From Pelomyxa schiedti (lineage: Eukaryota > Protista > Evosea), in assembly GCA_020536535.1 (NCBI GenBank), contig JAHLWZ010000839.1:21930-85929 (forward strand): a stretch of DNA of 64,000 nucleotides, written 5' to 3'. Shown piece by piece: positions 1 to 13,300 of the stretch. Positions within the stretch are counted from its first letter, which is position 1, and the number at the start of each line of letters is the position of its first letter. Under the pieces are notes generated by a model that saw nothing but the letters and a program-made list of their open reading frames with translations, was not told where the DNA came from and did not search any database. Both the position numbers and the translations under genes were made by a program.

Positions 1-2139
1 ACCGAATGCCCAACCTTCGGAAATTTCTCTATCAAGTGCACTGGACTCGATGGGATGATGAATATCTTCCTGGAGAATCTACGGGCATTTTCATTTCAGC
101 CTCCCTGGTTTGTGAGAGTACTATTGACCAGATCCAACACAACGCAGGCTTCAGACCTGGGATAGTGATTACATACAAATTCCGATTGCCATCTCTGAAA
201 CAATGTTTTCGTGGGTAGAAGGACTCGTTGAAGAAGTTTCGGGTATATTGTGTGCGATTGATGTTTTTCACTCTACCTAAAAAAATAGAGGAGGCAACAG
301 CCTCTCTTGAAGTTTCCTCAGTCATCTTCAAGGCCATAATGGGCATTACGTATGTCACGAATAAGTATAAAATTCAAAGTTAACTTTACTCTTTAGGCTG
401 CCTATATGCCTTGTTTTATTCTACGCGTTCAATTACTCAATAAATCGACTAGACGTCGAGTTTCGAGAGTTGCTTTTCACGTTTTTATATCAATTCTTAT
501 TATCGTGTAGGACTCTCAAGATATTACTTAGCTTACCACTCGATATTATTCAAGGGACTGTTCTAATAAATCGATTTCTAGAGACGGGATCAATACACAG
601 TCTCAGTTTAAAACACTCTGTGGTGCGTAAGATATTACATTGCCATTCCTAACCCAAGGTAGGAAGAGAAGGAGAAAAAGACACGTCTCCTAGATGGATC
701 AAAAGATGCTGTGATAGTACTCAATGAAAGGTCGCACTCGTAATCCACTCATTTGTGACACATGAATAGAGGGACAATAGAATCCTTTAATCCAAGTGCC
801 GAGAGTCTTTTTGAATGCACTTCAAAAGAAGTGCTTGGCAGACATGCAAGTATAATCCTGCCAGACACTGTTATCCACCCATTTAGCGTGAGAATGGAAA
901 TGCTGATGAACAATACATTGAAGCAACAAAAAAATAAGGCGGAAGGCAACGACGAACCGCCTGCATTGGACGGTATGGAACTGATCATTTCCAACAAAGG
1001 TATATATTTCCAAATGTGATTGTGGCTGTTTATGACTAAAAATAGAGGAGAAAGAAGTCCCAGTACTACTTTCTGTAACTGAAATTGTTACCAAAGACGG
1101 TTGTTACCTCACCGCCCATTCAATCTTTAACTGAGTATTACTAGGCGTGACTGTCGCCATGTTCCTGAAGGACATCAGCAACCTGAAAGCACAGCAAGCA
1201 ATAATAGAAAACCAAAAAAAACACACGGAATCTCTTCTCGAAAATATACTGCCCAAAATGATAAAAGAAAAGCTTGAGATAAATCCTGACAAACTTATTG
1301 CTGAGAAATACAAGAATGTTACTGTTGCCTTTGCTGACATTGTGGAGTGAGTACTGCTTTCTCCTTTCTTCATTGCTAAGTTGTGGAGGTTTACTCCAAT
1401 GGCTTCCAAGATGAGACCTTGGGAGTTAGTAAGCATGCTGAATTCTTTATTTTCTGCCTGGGACGGACTCCTGGATAGTTACCATGTTGAAAAGATAAAA
1501 ACAATTGGAGATTGGTTGTTCAATGAATTTTATAACCAAAAATTGACAATCACTCAGTTACATGGTTACTGGAGGGATGCCAGAGGAATCCAATACCCAC
1601 GCAGAAGACGTGCTTGAACTTGTGATTGCCATGTTTTCCACCCTTGAAAGGTACAATACACTTCATGACACAAGTCTTCATATTAGAGTTGGTATGCCCC
1701 TTCTCCCTTCGCCAAAGTTAAGGGAAAAACAAAAAAAAAAAGGCATAAACACTGGACCAGTAGTTGCTGGTGTCATAGGGAAAAAAAAGTGGGCATTCGA
1801 TATTTGGGGAGATACTGTAAACACAGCAAGCCGGTACAATTCCCTCTTCACTCCCTATTGGTCCCAATTCTTTGCAGGCTTGAGAGCTCTGGTGTACCTG
1901 ACCGCATTCAAGTCTCTGAAATTACCAAAGACCTTTTGGTCTCCAAGGGCTATCAATTTGAGTCCAGGGGAGTAATTCAAATCAAAGGCAAGGGTGAAAC
2001 TGAGTGCTTCCTATTGTATGGGATCCACAACAACTTCGGAGATGTTTACAAATCCTTTAGGGCAGAACCAAAACTACATCAAGCAAAAAGACCCATTCCT
2101 GAGGTAATGGACAGCAAATCTATGACGAGCGCCTATTAA
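1..2139 (+). CDS. Membrane-associated PAS-domain class III adenylate cyclase (5' end outside window, multi-exon)
   Basis: Spliced translation gives a hydrophobic segment, a PAS domain (DAVIVLNERGTIESFNPSAESLF), a signalling helix (TESLLENILPK) and cyclase motifs VTVAFADIVEFT, VEKIKTIGDCYM, IRVGINTGPVVAGVIG and FDIWGDTVNTASRLES. Lys and Asp at the specificity positions point to ATP. Stop at 2137-2139. Confidence 0.9.
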
Positions 2140-2240
2140 GAAAATATTAACTAGCGGTGTAAAAAAAAACCTGTGTCAATAAGAGACTTGAAAAAACCCA
2201 AATTTTGGCACTGCCAAAACAAAAACCACTCTTTCTTAGT

Positions 2241-5200
2241 TTATACATTATCAGGATTAGACTTAGAAGAGCTGGGCTTTAGAACATCCAGCTGTACTTC
2301 CATTTCAGAGCCATCATTTTCGTAATGTCCAGCCTCCATCTTCTGTTCTTTTAGTTCCTGTTCCTCCCTCTCCTTTGCCTCAATAATGGCGTGATATCTC
2401 TTCTCTTTGAGGTTCCTGTTACAAGAAAGTGTTGCTAGTAGTGCCCATTTGTTTTGTGCATGGAGTCTGGATGTGGGCTTATCTTTGGCTGCGGAGCCTG
2501 GATCGCCTCTCGTTTCTTTTTCTTTTTCTTTGTGTTGCTGATTGGCTAGTGTTTTGGTATTTGTTAGTGTTTTAATTTGGGGTTTTTTGAGTGTAGAACC
2601 TTGTGATAATACATGCAGAAATACATTTGTGGCTGGGTTGTTATAAATGTTATCTGTGATGAACATACTGGCAAAGGCACTGTAGCCTAAATACCGTTAA
2701 GAGGGGAAGACTTTTGGAAGAGTGAAGGAACCTTTGTCCATGAAAACCAAATCCTGCATTCCAATTAGAGGGTAGTCCATTCGGAAGAAGAACAAAAATG
2801 TCATTCCTCTTTTTGCAAAAGATTAGAGAAGAATAGGAAAAAAGGATACAACATCGCGGTAGCAAGACGGATTATTGAAGATGTAATGCCAGCAAGGCTA
2901 CTCATATTTTAGGACCCCGAAGAGGAAAGAAAGGTTAAAATACATTCCAACAAAGGTATTGGCAAAGTCATATAAAGCAAACAGTCTTCGATGTATGATG
3001 ACAAGGTGATCCAGCCAAAACATATCCACGACACTTTTTTGTTGCTTGTTAGATCAATTTGGAACAGGAAGCTTACAGAGTGACAAATAGCATTCGCACA
3101 ATGGTAGTTATAATGGATATAATAAGTGTATAATTGAAGCGTCTGTGTATATTCTTGATGATATCAATCATTAAACCAGTATAACCTTCCTTGGGTTAGC
3201 TCAAATACTTTGATTACACTAAACATACCAAAGATAAAGAATATGACCCACAGAACGGCAAAAACTACAAAATAGGCAATAGCTGTATGACTGGAAGAAG
3301 AATTAGCGCTGGAAAGAATATGGAAGCACCTGCCTCACTTGCATCCCGACATAGTTACTTGCTGTAGAGAGAGATACCGATCTTGGGTCGACGACAACTT
3401 TTCCTTGTCTAACAAGCATCACCTAGGAAACATGGGTACAGAAACTAGCAAAAAGGAAGATATACATTGTTTCTGTAACTGTAAAAAAGGAGAAGCCACA
3501 TGAGTAGACCAATGACTAACGTCACCTAAATAGAGTTAGTTGTTCACTTTTTCGTTGAACATTGTGAGATACAGCAGCAGCAGCTTGACCAGAAGAGATT
3601 ACTTTTTCCCCTATAGCATCTAAAACCCCACCTGGGCCACTTTCAGATGTTATGGCATACAACTTTTGGGCAAGCAGTAAAATGATGTTTCCTCCATTGC
3701 CAAGATCCTACAGGATATAAACTGAAGAAGACAGTATGCAAGAGAACCTGTGACGATAAGGAGTTTATCATTTCACTGACTATCTGGGAACCAAAGCCAA
3801 TAGCACTTGGAATATCAACATCAAGGCCAAGTTTGTTAGCCACAGACACAGCACTGTCGATTGCCTTAATCTGTGAAGAGTCAATTAGCACTGTGATTAC
3901 TGAGTAGATTCTTGTCTCAACCTCAAGATCAATCATTCCGTTTTTAGCCACTTGGATAGAATAGGAAATCCAATATTCCACCCAAAATGTGGCCAGATAA
4001 CAGTATAACAGACACAGAAAAGAAAGGCCCGCGGCTAAAAGGAAACGTTGGGGGAAGGTAAAGGAGCTCCAAGATTCAAGCCATTTATGCTGGTTAGGAG
4101 CTACTGTAGTCAGTATTTGATGGGAAGAAGGAATGATTACCAGGAGAGAAAAAGTAGTATCGGATCTTGAAAATTGCTTTTTCAATAAGGGAAGCTTCAG
4201 GAGAGAGGGAGGGCATTGGTATGGCCGGTGGAGGCCTTTCCACTAATTTGGAGCAGTGCTCTTTCCAGTTGGTCATCCTGTGCAGCCACAAAATAAGTGC
4301 TGATAGAAAATTAAGCTGATAGAAAACCTTGCAACTTCCCTTGTAAGATGGTTGTGCCCACTAATTGCAAGGTATACAATCACTCCTAAAGTTACTGCCA
4401 AAAATGCATATACAGAGAAAAAAATCTGGAAAGATGAATTTCAGGGATGTTGTGTTGTTAATCGTACAGTTGCAAGGCATATAGAAAAGGGATCAGGCTC
4501 CCCTTGAAGTACAATTGCCAGAGCCGTCACAACAGCCCCAAAAAGAAGTAGTATAATAGCAACAATTATGGACAGTATGACCTAGGGAACACCTCAGGTG
4601 CAAATAATTAGAAATGGGACTACAGATAGCCTAAAAACAAAGCGTGTGGATGCCCAAGTGCTGTTCGCAAAAAACTGGATAAAGTGAGCTTGATAGCTAG
4701 GAGCACTTAATATTTACCATGGGGATTACAAGTATCATTAAAACATAGACCAAATTTTTAATTAGGCCTAAGTGTGAGTGAGAAGGTTCAGTGGCGAAAA
4801 GAGATTACTGAAAGATGAGACATCTGGAGACTGCAGGTTATACAAGTGGAACCTATCGCTTTCAATGAAAATTCCATCACAGAAGAACTAGGTTTGGGGT
4901 AGTGTGCATTTAACTTTCTACAGTGGTACCACAAATGAATAAAATCCGGATGAACCAGAAACAAAATGTAGATCAGAAAATATGTAGACACCATTCTCAT
5001 TTGTAAGTTGTCCAGTCTGAAAAAAAGATTAGTCGAGAAAAGCATATCTTGGAAATTGCATTGTAAGATATGGTAGTCTCAGGAGAGAGTCTCTCTTGTA
5101 ATGATTTTTCTTCCTTCGAAACATCCTCATACTCCCGTCGTGCTACAAATACCTGTACTCTTCTCCCAAAAGAAGGGGTTCCTGAAGGAGCAGTGAGGTG

Positions 5201-8200
5201 TAGACATGTAACATCAATATCAACCATAGAGGTCATAGATAATGAGCTGTGGTTGTCTCAAAGAGGATATTTCTGCAGCTTCATCATCTCCAACAACGAC
5301 ACACTTTTCAACTAGAACCGTTGGGGTTGTAAGCCCAGCAGGTTGAGTCTTGAAAAAGAAAGTCACATTACAGGAAAAGGAATAGAGTGCAACCGTTGTT
5401 TCAACAATAGATAGATCATTGAGAATTTCAAAAGTATCAGAAACATCGCTTTTCCGTTCGTCATTTAACCCGACAAATTGCACACTATAGTTACCTGCCC
5501 AATATGTCAATGCAGCTTTATGTATACCTATGGAAACCTGCTGGAGCATCTATTAAACGGAAGCAAAACTCCACAAAACCACCAGATCCTGTTGTAGCCT
5601 GGCTGGTTTCATCACTGGCTCGTGCAATTTGCATTTCACTGTCTGGTTGCTTTAACGGAAAGAGTTAGAAACGGTGCAGATAAAAAGTTCAACCTGTGCA
5701 ACCACCACTTTCATGTCGTATTCCTCAAGCCCAGAATCCCCAGCAATTCTTGCTTGAAGTGTGAAGCACATTACACCACCCAAAAACATCCGAGTTGGCC
5801 TGGGACCACTGACAATTTCAATTGTGGAAGCCATGGCCGTCAAATCGAACTCCCGTGTACAAATTGAGTCTTCACTGTTTCTTTTGTTAGCATCTAAGTT
5901 TCAAAATTGAGATCCTCTACTCACTCGGTACTTAGAGTCAAGAAACACATTTTGTAAGATTTGCCTGCCACACCCAGTGAGATTATCCATGACTCAAAAG
6001 TGATTTCAGTGCTTGGTAGGTTAGGAAGGGCATCAGCCAAGGGAAAAAGTACTTGGAACCGATTTGCACTGGGTATTGTGGAACAGCAACCCCTGTACCA
6101 TCAACAGATTTCACAGTTGTTAAAACTACTGGAAATGGAATGTAACATGATACTCGACCATCCTCTGAGGCCTATTTTGAGGAAAGAAATGGAAAATGTA
6201 GAGGAGTAGCTACTCGCTCAGCCAGCATTTTAATTATAGGGGGCTGTGAAAATGGTTGTTGTGGGGCAATCACTGCTGAGGGTTGTCTCAGCAATTCCAA
6301 GGTGATCTGAATTTCTGTCAATAGAAGAGAATAGGAAAAAAAGGAGAAAAACCGTCCACAAAGAGAGGTCAATTTCAGAAACAGGTTCCAGAATAGTACC
6401 ATCAAGGACAAAACAGATTTTGAGTTTCCCACTCCCAAGGGAAATTACTCCAATATCTAAGGGAGATTATTGTTAGGTGTTATTGCTCATGTATACCATT
6501 AAAAACTGCAAGGCCAGTATTGTCCACAGGCGTACTCCACCCCCATATTTCACTTTGAGGTGACACTGATGACAGACTTGCCACAACAGCTTCATCAAAT
6601 GAGAAATCCAAATCAAGGGTGTCACAGTTAATGGCAAGCATCCGTGTTCCTTTGATGGATTATTGAAAAAAGAGAAAAAAGACTCGTGCCTGTAAGATTT
6701 CCCCCAGTGGAGGGAGTCAGCAGCACAATAGGTTGAATAGAAAACGGTTCACATAAGGAGCCGTTCCTGAGGGCAGCTTCTACAATGATAACAGCATTTT
6801 GCACTGGAGCCTGTGCGACCACGTGAATATATTCTTCAGATTGAATTCCATCTAGCTGAAGATAAAACCAATAAGAGCCAGGGTAAATCAGCGTAACACC
6901 AAGTGTTTCTATGTCAAGTGAGTAAGTCAATTTATTCAAAAAAAAGAATTTGGTACCTTTGTTGAAACTCACACAGGGGTTGGAAGTTGTGCACAATGTT
7001 GCATATACTGGTGGGCACGCCTGTTGTCTAAGATAGGCATAGTTCCAACTGACGCTATTATTGCTAGAGTCAAGTGCCAGTGCCTACCCCACAAATAAGC
7101 TAAATTTGAGAAAATAGCTGAAACACTTGAATGTAAAATTCTTCATTTATGTTGATAGTGGCAACAGAGGAAATATGGACCTTGACAACTGAAACGGTGA
7201 TGTTTTATGAGAGGAAGAAAATGAACTTACTTGGGTTGTCGATTTTAATCATGAAGAAAGCGCTTGAGCAGTCCTGCACCACTGTTTCAGTAAAACTAGA
7301 ATATGTCTGTACCAAATAGAGTTCGCCCCAATATTCCCCAGGATAACCTGAGACACAAACAAGGTAAATGTATAGAAAAGACAGAGTGTGCACCACCATC
7401 ATCAATTTGGAAATGAGCATCAAAAATCCAGCCATTAGCGCCGCTTGTTAGAATAACATCATCACTTGATGTTATTTGGCGGTATTCTTGTGAGGCAGTA
7501 TAAATAATCATATCTGAGAGTAAGTTGTAGTCCAAGTTGTTGTTATAGTATGATGTCATTGGTTCACTCTCTCCATTGAAAACCTGTAGACTATTACACA
7601 GAATACAGAATACAGAAGCATAGATAGAGCCTACCCTAATGCCAATGGTAAAGGGTTGCCCGATTTGTACTTGGCAATAAGACTCTTCATTCAGGATAAC
7701 CTCAATATCCGAGCATAAATGAGAATTTTCCTTCGAGATGTAATTGGCTCACTATGCAATAATTGGAGACTCACCTGAGGGTCAGACACACCCCACTGAA
7801 AGGGAGCAGCTATTCCATCTACTGAGATGATAGCAGAATATGTTCTATTCTCCCAGTCAGCATCAACTCGTGCAGTGAGAAGATCTCCAAATAAAGCTAG
7901 TCCCTGATTACTAGAAAGAATAAAAAAACAACACCATGTTAAGAAGGCACAGAGGCATACTCAGAAGCAACTGGATAATAGTGGAAGGCAGTGCCAACCT
8001 CGGATTCTAGGAACGCAATTTTCCCAGGAATACCTGTCCAGGCTTCAAAATCTGGAGTAAGCATTATCAATACCCACCTTGCCCACTTTCATCAAAGATG
8101 AGAATAACAGGGGACTGTAATGTAACACCAATTTGGTTTTTAGCATTGAGTGAATAAACTGACACAAATCCAGCCACAGTCGTGGTAACATTTATAATGT

Positions 8201-10001
8201 CTGATTCAAGAGATTCAACACCCTCACAGAAGAATGTGATCCTGTGAGGACCAGGGGGTCCACGAACTAAGAAACTCATTGACATGGTGGCACTGTAGAA
8301 AGCTGAGCGAAATCATTAAGATAGATATTGCACACAATCCAGAAGAGTTTGTTGGAGGAGACACAGGATTGTCCAGATATTTAATAGGTATCCATGACTC
8401 ATAGCTTGCTTCATATGGTCCCCGTCTTCGCCCATCTGCAATACCTATTTACTACATAGGGAAAAAAAGTGGAAGGATACTCCATTCAGTTATCATGGCA
8501 ATCACAACTTTTCCCTGCAAAGCGTGTCCATCACCATCAACTACCTTTAGAACCATATCAAATTGAGATCCTTCCTTTACAGATGAAGGTGGGTCACTGA
8601 TAATGATTACAGACGCAACTAATAGTGTGTCAAAAAAGACAAAGAGAGTGGGGGCAACCATCAGTTTTAACTTTTGGAATGAGACCCTCTGAAGTAAAGA
8701 GAAACTTGAATGCCTGCTCACAGACCTTTTTTTTGTATAAAAAAGCATTGGGTGAAATGAGTGAGATTTTTCATACAGCCATAATATAAAGTTCTCCAAA
8801 ATTTGATGCATTTAACGTTAAACCCTTAAATGTAGCCTTTCCTGTAATGGTAGAGTACGCTTCAATTGGACTGACAATTGCTACAATAAAAATGTTATGA
8901 GATGTAAACAATATGATGAACTAAACCAAATTTTGGTGTACGAAGATCTTCAGTGAGCATGTATTGTGTGTAATAGTCTGCAGGATTTGAAAAAAGTAAC
9001 ACCCGTTTTCCTGAAAGTGGTTCCCCATTTGTATCAATAACCTTCACTTCGAGGTCAATGGGTGTCCTACTTCATATTAGAAACTTGGGAACTAAGATGA
9101 AAGGGTCAGAGGCACACACGCGGTATCCCACTCTGTAGGAATAGCTGTTAATTGTAAAATATTCCCCACTTTTGATTCTACAGATACAGTTGCAGTCTGG
9201 CTCAATGATGAAAGGGATTCGTCAGCAAATGAAAATCTCAGTGTGTATCTCCCTATAATTCCAGATTGTATCACAAAATCATTGAACATAGCATCTCCAT
9301 TTGCTGAGGTTGTATCTGTTTGTTGGTGAGTGTCATCTTTAGCCCCCAAAGTGCTAATCAAACGTGCATACTGCTGAAACCAGCAAGTACTGGGGTACAC
9401 ATTGGTGTAAATTGAATTATTTTGAGGGGATTAACGATTCCAATACAATCCAGTGAGGTTATATTAGTAGCAATCTGTTCCACTAGCATCATATATCAGA
9501 TTTCAAAAAGGAGGAAGTGCAGGAGAACCTGACACCACAATGTCCCATCCATCAGCAGGGAACCCTTCCAAGTTTTTCACATACAGCCAAGGAACCTGCT
9601 CTAGTGGTTCCCCTATAACGACATAAACAGGAGGCTGCACAAACATATTCATCTGATACACAAAGAGCCTGAATAAAATAGCAATAGTAAAAAAAGAAAC
9701 AAACCTTATTGGGTGTGTTTTCACCAAGTGCATTTCGTGGGTCCCTAAAAACAGAAAACAACAACAAAGTGGCACTAAAAAAAAAAAAGGAACCGTTAGT
9801 GAGACACAAGACCATAACTTTTACGTTTCTTCTTTTGTTGGGTTATTATGGGAGAGAGACATAGACGTACACCATGCAGAACACGATCATCAACGTGGCA
9901 ATTGTGAAAAAATTGTCCCTGACTCGGTCATTGATCAAATCATAGAACACAGGGATCCGAATCTCGCGCGGGTATTTCCCAGGTGCCTTGTCGACGTACA
10001 T
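2241..10001 (-). CDS. Large multi-exon membrane protein: N-terminal TM, many Ig-like (invasin/Big-type) repeats, C-terminal STRA6-like multi-pass domain
   Basis: Probable ATG at 10001 (MYVDKAPGKYP...IATLMIVFCMVATLLLFSVF). Repeated beta-rich units (VDTNGEPLSGKRV, VDGDGHALQGKVV, FDESGQGIPGK, NGDAMFNDFVIQSGIIGRYTLRFSF). C-terminus IIHRRLFALYDFANTFVGILAGITSSIIRL...RMDYPL...MDKGYSAFASMF...NNPATNVFLHVL...QNKWALLATLSCNRNL resembles STRA6. Not every junction in the ectodomain was traced. Confidence 0.75.
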
Positions 10002-10354: not shown

Positions 10355-13300
10355 ATGAGTTTTTGTTTTCTGAGCGTTACGCACCGTGCCACTTCGGTGC
10401 ATCACTGTGTGTCGGGGCACCTCACGTCCGACCAAGATTCCAACTTGGTTTTGGCTCGCGCAAACATTTTGCAGATCTACTCCCTGTCTACGTCCCACCC
10501 TTTGGAAGAGGCATTTTATTTTTTTTTTTTTTTTTTTTTTTCTTTCTTCCCCCTTTTTTCTTTTCTTTCTTTCTTGCTTTCTTACTTTTGTTTTTCCTCC
10601 CCTTTGTATCTTCCTTTCTTGTTGTCATTGGATTTCATCACATTTGTTTTAATTAATCACGGCTATTTGACAGGACCCGAGTAGTGGAGTGGATGGGAAA
10701 TCTCACCGTCTAGATCTGCTTCATGAATGGGAGTTGTGCGGAAACATCGAATCTTTGTCACTCGTTCAGTTTCCACGAGAGAGCTGTGATTCTCTGGTTG
10801 TTTCATTTGCTGATGCAAAAGTGTCTGTTTTGAAGTATAACAGAAGTTCTGCTTCCCTGGACATTTGTTCAATGCACTGCTACGAGCAAGCAGATTTAAG
10901 GGTATTCCTAGTTTCCTTCCTATCCCTCATGTAACGAATTTATTTTCATGTTTTTTTTTTTTATCTTTTTATTTTATTTTTTTCTCTAGGAAGGTAGGGA
11001 AAGAGTTTCATTTCCCCCACTTGTTAGAATAGATTCCCAGCAGAGATGTGCCGCTGTACTTGTGTATGACCACAATATAGCTATAATTCCATTTGCGGAC
11101 ACTAACTCGTTGGATGAGATGTAAGTCCGTTTCTCTACAGCATAGTGAGTTCCTTATTGTTTCCATAAGGGAGCAGGATTCTAAGCTGTCTATCTTGAAC
11201 ACCTTGAGCTCCTTTACTTTCAGCCTTTCAGCCATTAATGTTTCGAATGTGAGGGACTTCTGTTTTCTCACTGGCTATTTTGAGCCCACTCTTGTTGTAC
11301 TGCATGAAAGTCCCATCACGACTTGGGCTGGGTAGATCTCTTCTGTTCCCACAAAAGTTTTCATTCCTCAAAAAGACGTCTACCAGCAGTCAAGGACACC
11401 TGCAGTGCAACAGTTGTTTCCCTTCAAATGTCTAAGCACACCAGAACGATTTTATGGACAGCTGATAAACTGCCACATAATTGCTTTTTGTCTCTTCCCG
11501 TCCCTGATCCATTAGGTAAAAGAGGCTTCCACGTAAATTTGTGGATAAATCCTTCATCCAGGTGGAATATTGGTTTTGTCCCCAAATTCTGCATTATACC
11601 TGAACCAGAATTACCGATTTGCCTTCTTGTTCAATGACTTTGGCGATGTCAATTCCGTTTTTATTGCCAGAGGTGTCTTCCTTTATGTGCATTCCTTCAT
11701 GTGTAATTTTGTGGCCAAAAGACCAGTCTAAAGACCCCATTGTCGCCGACGCTGCAAAGGCCCTGTTTGTAACGAAAGATACCCTCCTGATATCTCTTCG
11801 AGGAGGAGAATTGTATCTCCTTCTACCCCTTTTGAACTACTCACTATTAATAAGGTATGTGCTGCATCTTATTCATGACGGGCGAAGTGTTACTGGTATG
11901 ACACTTGTAAAAGCCGGGACAACTGCAATTGCCTCTTGCGTAAGCCTTTATTCTTCCGGCTCAAACATCAGCTGTAATTTTTACTGTTTTCAGATGTGTC
12001 TCTTACCAATTCCGAAGTATATGTTTATTGGGTCTTACCATGGAGATTCTCTTCTTTTATCCTATAGTGAAAACGCTTCGGTGGATATTGGTTTAAGGGT
12101 TTGTTCTACAGTGCACTCTACTGTTTTAAAACAGAAATGCAGCCCCCTGCCCCTAAACGTTCAAAAGTGGTGAAGGGTGAGTCACCATCATTCTTGGATG
12201 AGATTGACGACCTGCAACTTTACAGTAATTCGGAACCCCAAGTCGCAACCACTGGGCCATTTCCTACTGTGTGCCACCTTAACTAGTTTTTTAAGCATTT
12301 CTATTTACTTTCACAGTCAGGATATAAATTTTCAGTTGTTGATCAACTTCCTTGTCTGAGTCCGATAAGAGACCTCGCTGTTGGTGAGTCATATGATATT
12401 TACAGCACTTCTATAGCGGTGAGTTGCTTCCCCGCCGTGCCATTCTGACTGCGACCCAGGAGGGAAACCCACGGAAGTTCCTTGAGATGGTTGCATGCTC
12501 TGGTCATGGAAGAAATGGCAGTCTTTTTATTCTTCAAGTATCGACTTGCTCTTCTCATTTGGGAGATTTACTTTGAAAAAGAATGGAATCCGTCCTGACG
12601 TTGTCTCCTCCAGCACCGATTTACTTGGCTGTGTGTCTATGTGGTCCCTGCATGGGTGGAAAGAGAGCGACTCACATGAACACCACAGTGGCCTAAAGGA
12701 GCATGCCACACTTGTTGTCAGTAAGGCTGATGCAACTTTGGTGTGTTCGTTTTAAGGAGGACCTATTATCACCTCATACTTGCCAAAAAGATTTTTGCTT
12801 CTGGTGAGCAAATACAAGAAATCTCCGATAGAGTCGAGTTTTTTACTACTGGAGCAACGATATTGGCCTCAAACATTCTTTCTGATAAGTTAATTGTACA
12901 AGTTTATCAGTCAGGGATCAAACTCATTAACACAAGTAAGCTTGTATTTCGACCAACATGAAAATACTTACAATTTCTAATAGCAACCTTGAAACAAATT
13001 CACAAACTTTCTCCACCACCTGGAGGAACCATCACATTCGCCTGCTGTGAGGATCCATATGTAGGCATTCTCCTTTCCAACGGTTCCTTTTATCTTTATG
13101 TGGTCACAGAGAGCTCAAGGCTCCAACAGTTGCCCAACCAACTGGTTCTTTCCTTTTTTAAAATAAATCATAAACCTGATATTCTTATAGGTGGATTCCA
13201 GCATCAGGGCTATAAACCTTTTCAGCACTTGCACATGCACCACTCCTACACAGCCACCCACTTTTCATGAGCCAGATCCATTGGAAGCTGAGCTCTATGG

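Follow-up and report, generated by a model that had tools for sequence, protein, structure and literature searches.

A Pelomyxa schiedti gene predicted to join a string of Ig-like domains to a STRA6-like membrane core

Animal STRA6 has its N-terminus outside the cell and its C-terminus inside, and the outer N-terminus is only short. It binds holo-RBP4 and takes up retinol, its fold has an outer cleft, and calmodulin is constitutively attached to its C-terminal cytoplasmic helices. RBP4, the known carrier of the STRA6 ligand, is a vertebrate protein, and the family's known tie is to vitamin A transport. Animal STRA6 was described as a dimer whose protomers each have nine transmembrane helices, with bound calmodulin and a lateral window to the bilayer (PMC12953553), and the family was called animal-specific in one paper (PMC5977736). 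A gene with a STRA6-like part was studied here in a 64,000-nucleotide stretch of the genome of Pelomyxa schiedti, an anaerobic amoebozoan (contig JAHLWZ010000839.1, positions 21,930 to 85,929 of the forward strand; the whole stretch is called the window). It probably encodes, as one gene, a large surface membrane protein in which a string of immunoglobulin-like (Ig-like) domains would be a capture or adhesion arm that feeds a STRA6-like core. We regard it as a real, undescribed variant of the STRA6 family, represented by one gene in one species.

2241..10001, minus strand: whole gene, 48 exons and 47 introns, 1861 codons plus stop.

The product of this gene is NCBI KAH3755904.1 (hypothetical protein Pelo_12283, Pelomyxa schiedti, 1861 residues). 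The deposited protein (P0001) was threaded onto the window and fits it exactly, on the minus strand between 10001 and 2241. A preliminary description of the locus had quoted C-terminal peptides, and these are present in P0001 as HRRLFALYDFANTFVGILAGITSSIIRLATAIGMTFLFFFRMDYPL...MDKGYSAFASMFITDNIYNNPATNVFLHVL...NKWALLATLSCNRNL, with one split codon differing from the splice read there. When the last exon was searched by phmmer against the full library of 1.84 billion representatives, one protein only was retrieved, 1861 residues long and 100% identical, the gene's own product. No description of a non-animal STRA6 was found in the literature searched, in searches requiring the term STRA6; calling the gene an "undescribed system", as had been done, is fair for that literature, but the protein was already in NCBI, where the PF14752 (Pfam RBP_receptor, STRA6) label is precomputed on KAH3755904.1.

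The protein is predicted to start with a short cytoplasmic N-terminus and one hydrophobic anchor or signal segment. Ten Ig-like beta-sandwich domains (~1200 residues) would then be displayed outside the cell, followed by a multi-pass core of ~560 residues, whose second half and tail form a diverged member of the STRA6 family.

9744..9908, minus strand: N-terminal hydrophobic segment, residues 32–54, hydropathy peak 2.64, spanning the exon 1/2 junction.
4822..9743, minus strand: predicted outer (extracellular) part, residues 55–1254, with 10 N-x-S/T sites and 20 Cys.
2382..4821, minus strand: membrane core, residues 1255–1815, ~560 residues, multi-pass by hydropathy.
2397..3413, minus strand: match to Pfam RBP_receptor (STRA6), residues 1578–1810, model positions 356–603 of 605, exons 41–48.
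2244..2606, minus strand: putative cytoplasmic tail, residues 1759–1861, from the PF14752 alignment and charge.

The whole of P0001 scored 42.3 bits (E 5.7e-11) against PF14752, above its gathering cut-off of 25 bits. The profile search that the preliminary description had proposed thus gave a significant match, which was strongest when residues 1578–1815 were searched as a sub-range. The sub-ranges scored against PF14752 as follows.

Residues 1578–1815, minus strand: 52.2 bits, E 5.8e-14, model 365–603.
Residues 1578–1765 (without the charged tail), minus strand: 28.1 bits, model 365–547.
Residues 1600–1790, minus strand: 35.4 bits, model 383–554.
Residues 1690–1815, minus strand: 39.6 bits, model 475–603.
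Residues 1640–1740, minus strand: 9.3 bits, model 430–522.
Residues 1732–1861, minus strand: 20.1 bits, model 515–603.

The mapping was collinear each time, and PF14752 was the top, mostly the sole, family for each matching sub-range. The last exon alone gave 21 bits (E 1.6e-4, model 515–603), and nothing came from the remaining exon pieces. By Pfam's threshold, the C-terminal half of the core and the tail are a diverged member of the STRA6 (RBP_receptor) family.

A compositional coincidence of hydrophobic helices with a charged tail, without homology, might also produce such a match. Half of the PF14752 model only is matched, a pairwise match to any STRA6 was not found, and in one screen hits lying wholly above RBP_receptor position 400 had to be dropped (PMC9333335). 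The collinear mapping, starting at model position 356–365 and not 400, answers this caution on possibly spurious matches. The score of 52 bits was moreover reached despite the HMMER bias correction. Among the language-model look-alikes shown for the core, an independent comparison, the best were again RBP_receptor clusters (score 0.79, ~180 of 256 shared features), which is a lead and not proof. We consider coincidence highly improbable.

Several results weigh against a full STRA6 assignment of the core. Model positions 1–355 were unmatched, and residues 1250–1580 and 1400–1600 gave no PF14752 match even at E 10, so of the STRA6-type membrane part claimed earlier the C-terminal portion stood above Pfam's threshold, but no match extended over the full domain with its N-terminal helices and its outer region for carrier docking. 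No STRA6 turned up when the core was searched pairwise against the protein collection, and the PDB sequences searched gave only chance matches and no STRA6 either. An AlphaFold model of residues 1250–1830 had a predicted local distance difference test (pLDDT) score of 44.7 and was unusable for fold comparison; it was made from the single sequence, as relatives to align with were lacking.

The unmatched first half of the core has 323 residues, versus 355 model positions, and holds five strong hydrophobic segments, both of which would agree with a complete STRA6-like core. Where STRA6 has nine helices, the Pelomyxa core shows eight hydrophobic segments that are strong and two that are weak.

Residues 1260–1278, 1297–1315, 1331–1349, 1428–1446, 1551–1569, 1607–1625, 1645–1674 and 1688–1713, minus strand: strong hydrophobic segments of the core, by hydropathy.
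Residues 1482–1500 and 1511–1529, minus strand: weak hydrophobic segments of the core, by hydropathy.

The charges of the core loops mostly fit an N-terminus outside and a C-terminus inside the cell, the exception being loop 1626–1644, and this orientation is likely by comparison with animal STRA6. The N-terminal transmembrane segment of the preliminary description was recovered by hydropathy at residues 32–54, and the 31-residue N-terminus ahead of it carries 6 K/R. Judged from these features, residues 32–54 are likely a signal anchor and possibly a signal peptide; if the segment is uncleaved, the Ig-like string would be membrane-tethered at both ends. An outer domain on the N-terminus of the core is topologically sensible, since the N-terminus of STRA6 lies outside and an extra N-terminal signal or anchor is present.

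Compared with animal STRA6/RBPR2 (PF14752; TCDB 2.A.90), the Pelomyxa protein shares the membrane domain's second half together with the tail, which match the family model, and its core is of similar overall length, multi-pass and likely N-out/C-in. It differs in having no match to the first 355 model positions, in carrying an added Ig-like outer part of 1200 residues and one more hydrophobic segment at the N-terminus, and in its host, an amoebozoan, for a family called animal-specific (PMC5977736).

Many Ig-like repeats had been described upstream of the core, and this proved correct: ~1200 residues form ten units, and the unit that was modelled, R3, is an Ig-like beta-sandwich. No hydrophobic segment was found by hydropathy in residues 55–1254. 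Window-against-self searches and the motif T..nG.A.F......G.Y.l.F delimited ten diverged repeats in residues 74–1252, ~117 residues each, with spacings of 100–138 residues.

9176–9634, minus strand: repeat R1, by repeat alignment (as for R2–R10).
8666–9175, minus strand: repeat R2.
8178–8659, minus strand: repeat R3, residues 315–432, an eight-strand Ig-like beta-sandwich in the AlphaFold model.
7716–8177, minus strand: repeat R4.
7262–7715, minus strand: repeat R5.
6778–7261, minus strand: repeat R6.
6353–6777, minus strand: repeat R7.
5835–6306, minus strand: repeat R8.
5403–5834, minus strand: repeat R9.
4828–5312, minus strand: repeat R10.

In leave-one-out profiles, nine of the ten repeats outscored all 200 shuffles; R4 was weak. 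R3 was modelled by AlphaFold with the ten repeats of the same protein as the input alignment, and the model was all beta, with pLDDT 83.6 and a predicted template modelling score (pTM) of 0.74. It is a beta-sandwich of ~100 residues. Foldseek searches of the PDB with this model gave intimin 1f00 (E 3.9e-4) and the macroglobulin (MG) domain of alpha2-macroglobulin 2p9r (E 6.3e-4), and matches at E 3e-4 to 3e-3 also included the Nir2 C-terminal domain, complement MG, S-layer SbsC, InvE and FdeC. In VIA, intimin 6tqd scored Z 10.0 with a root mean square deviation (rmsd) of 2.4 across 96 residues; Z was 9.4 for invasin 1cwv as well as for the MG domain of complement C5. In the ESM Atlas, Big_1/Invasin_D3/MG4 clusters were matched over ~100 residues with template modelling (TM) scores of 0.71–0.74 and rmsd ~2, and a feature search with the whole outer part agreed with these Big_1/Invasin/MG-type matches.

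No repeat reached a Pfam threshold, the best being MG4, with 13–20 bits (19.8 against a cut-off of 24.7), and Big_1, with 11.5 bits against 34.9, and the repeat profile found nothing significant among PDB sequences. In VIA, the R3 model scored Z 9–11 in a tie among the Ig-like domains of STAT, Runt and velvet, intimin, invasin and complement C5. Since the STAT, Runt and velvet domains score equally well, no more than a general Ig-like fold is established; the modelling confirmed the upstream repeats as Ig-like in fold, with no specific family assigned. They resemble the Big_1 domains of intimin/invasin and the macroglobulin MG domains in having the same beta-sandwich as modelled for R3, and they share a tandem string arrangement with adhesins. 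Unlike Big_1 and MG domains, none passes the Pfam threshold, and they lie in a eukaryotic gene, interrupted by many introns. About four short introns fall in each Ig-like unit (5403–9634, minus strand).

How the two parts might work together was modelled on animal STRA6, in which a soluble carrier docks and its greasy cargo passes sideways into the membrane. In the Pelomyxa protein the Ig-like string could serve as a built-in capture or adhesion arm, in place of the soluble carrier. Such an arm would bring a particle, a prey surface or a carrier-bound lipophilic molecule to the STRA6-like core, which would pass the ligand on into the bilayer or signal its binding via the basic cytoplasmic tail.

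The core might instead transport nothing, and be a multi-pass anchor and signalling platform (e.g. calcium/calmodulin on the basic tail) for an Ig-like adhesion or recognition protein. The carrier-docking site of STRA6 would be expected before model position 356, which is the unmatched half, and the repeats resemble domains of bacterial adhesins (intimin, invasin, FdeC) as well as macroglobulin domains. Animal STRA6 also signals, according to a review, but its membrane part has a "lateral window" for retinol into the bilayer (PMC12953553). In the Pelomyxa protein the tail is not conserved alone but together with the membrane helices (28 bits for residues 1578–1765), and the amphipathic moment of the tail is low. 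An anchor without transport is possible but rather doubtful, and the capture arm feeding the core is preferred.

In the tail, residues 1783–1812 form a basic stretch with NKWALLATLSCNRNL in it that lines up with the end of the STRA6 model and gives way to an acidic, K/E-rich terminus. The tail segment has a net charge of +2 to +3, Trp and Leu anchors, and a helical hydrophobic moment of only 0.04–0.20. This weak amphipathicity counts against the favoured reading, and calmodulin binding by the tail is purely inferred. The C-terminal tyrosine of JAK/STAT signalling is presumably not in place in the Pelomyxa tail, judging by the preliminary description's by-eye alignment with human STRA6.

By the gene model, and by inter-exon gaps of at most 96 nucleotides (nt), the outer part and the core would be encoded by one gene and one transcript. 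The introns of the threaded model are 40–96 nt long (median 44 nt), 44 of them GT-AG and three GC-AG. The published P. schiedti annotation was made by Augustus, PASA and EVM with transcript data, and counts 7.43 introns per gene, with 1.59% of introns genome-wide being GC-AG (PMC8887013). Spliced contigs from one single-cell RNA run of the same study were compared against positions 2201–8200 of the window (6000 letters), and covered parts of 5404–8200.

5495–5537, 5650–5693, 7084–7126, 7189–7230, 7584–7634 and 8034–8077, minus strand: introns confirmed by RNA, GT..AG, 42–51 nt.

The deposited model agreed with six of six RNA-supported junctions, all of which lie in the outer part. The gene is therefore transcribed from the minus strand, and the model is sound where it could be checked. 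The exons encoding hydrophobic residues 1297–1349 contain no Met codon and must therefore be spliced to an upstream exon, which favours one transcript. The introns around the outer/core junction are 41–43 nt long and GT-AG, like the RNA-confirmed ones.

Other observations tell against a single transcript. No RNA contig was found on 2201–5400, so the core and the outer/core junction rest on prediction; unspliced, exon 31 runs into a stop near 4770; and exons 32 and 33 measure a mere 50 and 51 nt and lack RNA support, exon 32 holding two Met codons (residues 1269 and 1275). The earlier claim of one gene thus agrees with the deposited model and its short gaps, but its outer/core junction is without RNA support. 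The same observations would fit an annotation merge, in which an Ig-repeat surface protein ends near 4770, a separate STRA6-like gene lies just downstream, and the fusion is a prediction artefact. Genes in this genome can also sit as little as ~100 nt apart (e.g. stops at 2139 and 2241). Exon 31 and exon 34 are however only 228 nt apart, the predicted introns between them share their length and GT-AG ends with the RNA-confirmed introns, translation started at Met 1269 would begin inside a hydrophobic helix, and the transcript-aided annotation (PASA/EVM, PMC8887013) retained a single gene. We consider a merge unlikely, and keep the reading of one gene and one transcript.

Details of the model are less certain at a few exons. 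The three GC-AG introns (6650–6689, 5017–5059 and 3291–3333, minus strand) make up 6.4% of the 47, and this share, compared with the 1.59% genome-wide, means that a few small exons may be mis-modelled, a further point against the protein as read here. Introns 2546–2599 (54 nt) and 3871–3921 (51 nt), on the minus strand, have lengths divisible by three and no in-frame stop. Their retention would add 18 and 17 residues with the frame kept, and the true isoform of the core is therefore uncertain. The exon 1/2 junction is without RNA support.

An in-house exon-chaining model was dropped for the deposited one, as only four of the six RNA junctions were recovered by it; it served only as a check for a stop-free path, and the whole-protein searches all used P0001. 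Contamination was considered and rejected: the introns are of the same short type as elsewhere on the contig, which is 86 kb long and carries typical amoebozoan genes, and the RNA stems from the same study as the genome.

Word-indexed protein searches returned the protein itself only, whether the core was entered within the whole protein, by itself or cut to the conserved 260 residues. Protein searches of the 52-Mb assembly found this locus and no paralogue of the core or the outer part. An exon-by-exon PF14752 search of the P. schiedti genome found nothing, not even this gene, and cannot detect paralogues. Metagenome scans with the core and with the outer part gave no relative. A relative of the same architecture was thus found neither in the protein collections, at the available sensitivity and with no full protein search of the outer part, nor in the metagenomes, which also weighs against the proposed protein. 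As no relative was found, conservation cannot support any function.

If the protein is a true family member, STRA6 would have arisen earlier than animals, barring gene transfer, and its membrane module would be able to work in the absence of RBP4. The Ig-like fusion hints at a first role of the module in contact- or capture-coupled handling of lipophilic molecules, and is a natural construct for how an outer binding part communicates with a STRA6 core. We suggest, tentatively and as a conjecture that may well be wrong, that the family predates animals, that its older form was a self-contained surface receptor with a covalent Ig-like arm, in place of a soluble carrier such as RBP4, delivering lipophilic cargo or a contact signal to the membrane core, and that animal STRA6 is a trimmed descendant in which capture was passed to a secreted carrier.

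The genes on either side delimit the locus.

762–2139, plus strand: PAS domain, then adenylate/guanylate cyclase catalytic domain, several exons, ending at 2139.
10689–13000, plus strand: RSE1/DDB1/CPSF1-type gene, first and second beta-propellers, starting near 10689.

The PAS/cyclase gene converges on the STRA6-like gene, with their stop codons at 2139 and 2241. The propeller gene and the STRA6-like gene point away from each other, across a common region of ~690 nt in which a long T/A-rich tract lies near 10470–10630.

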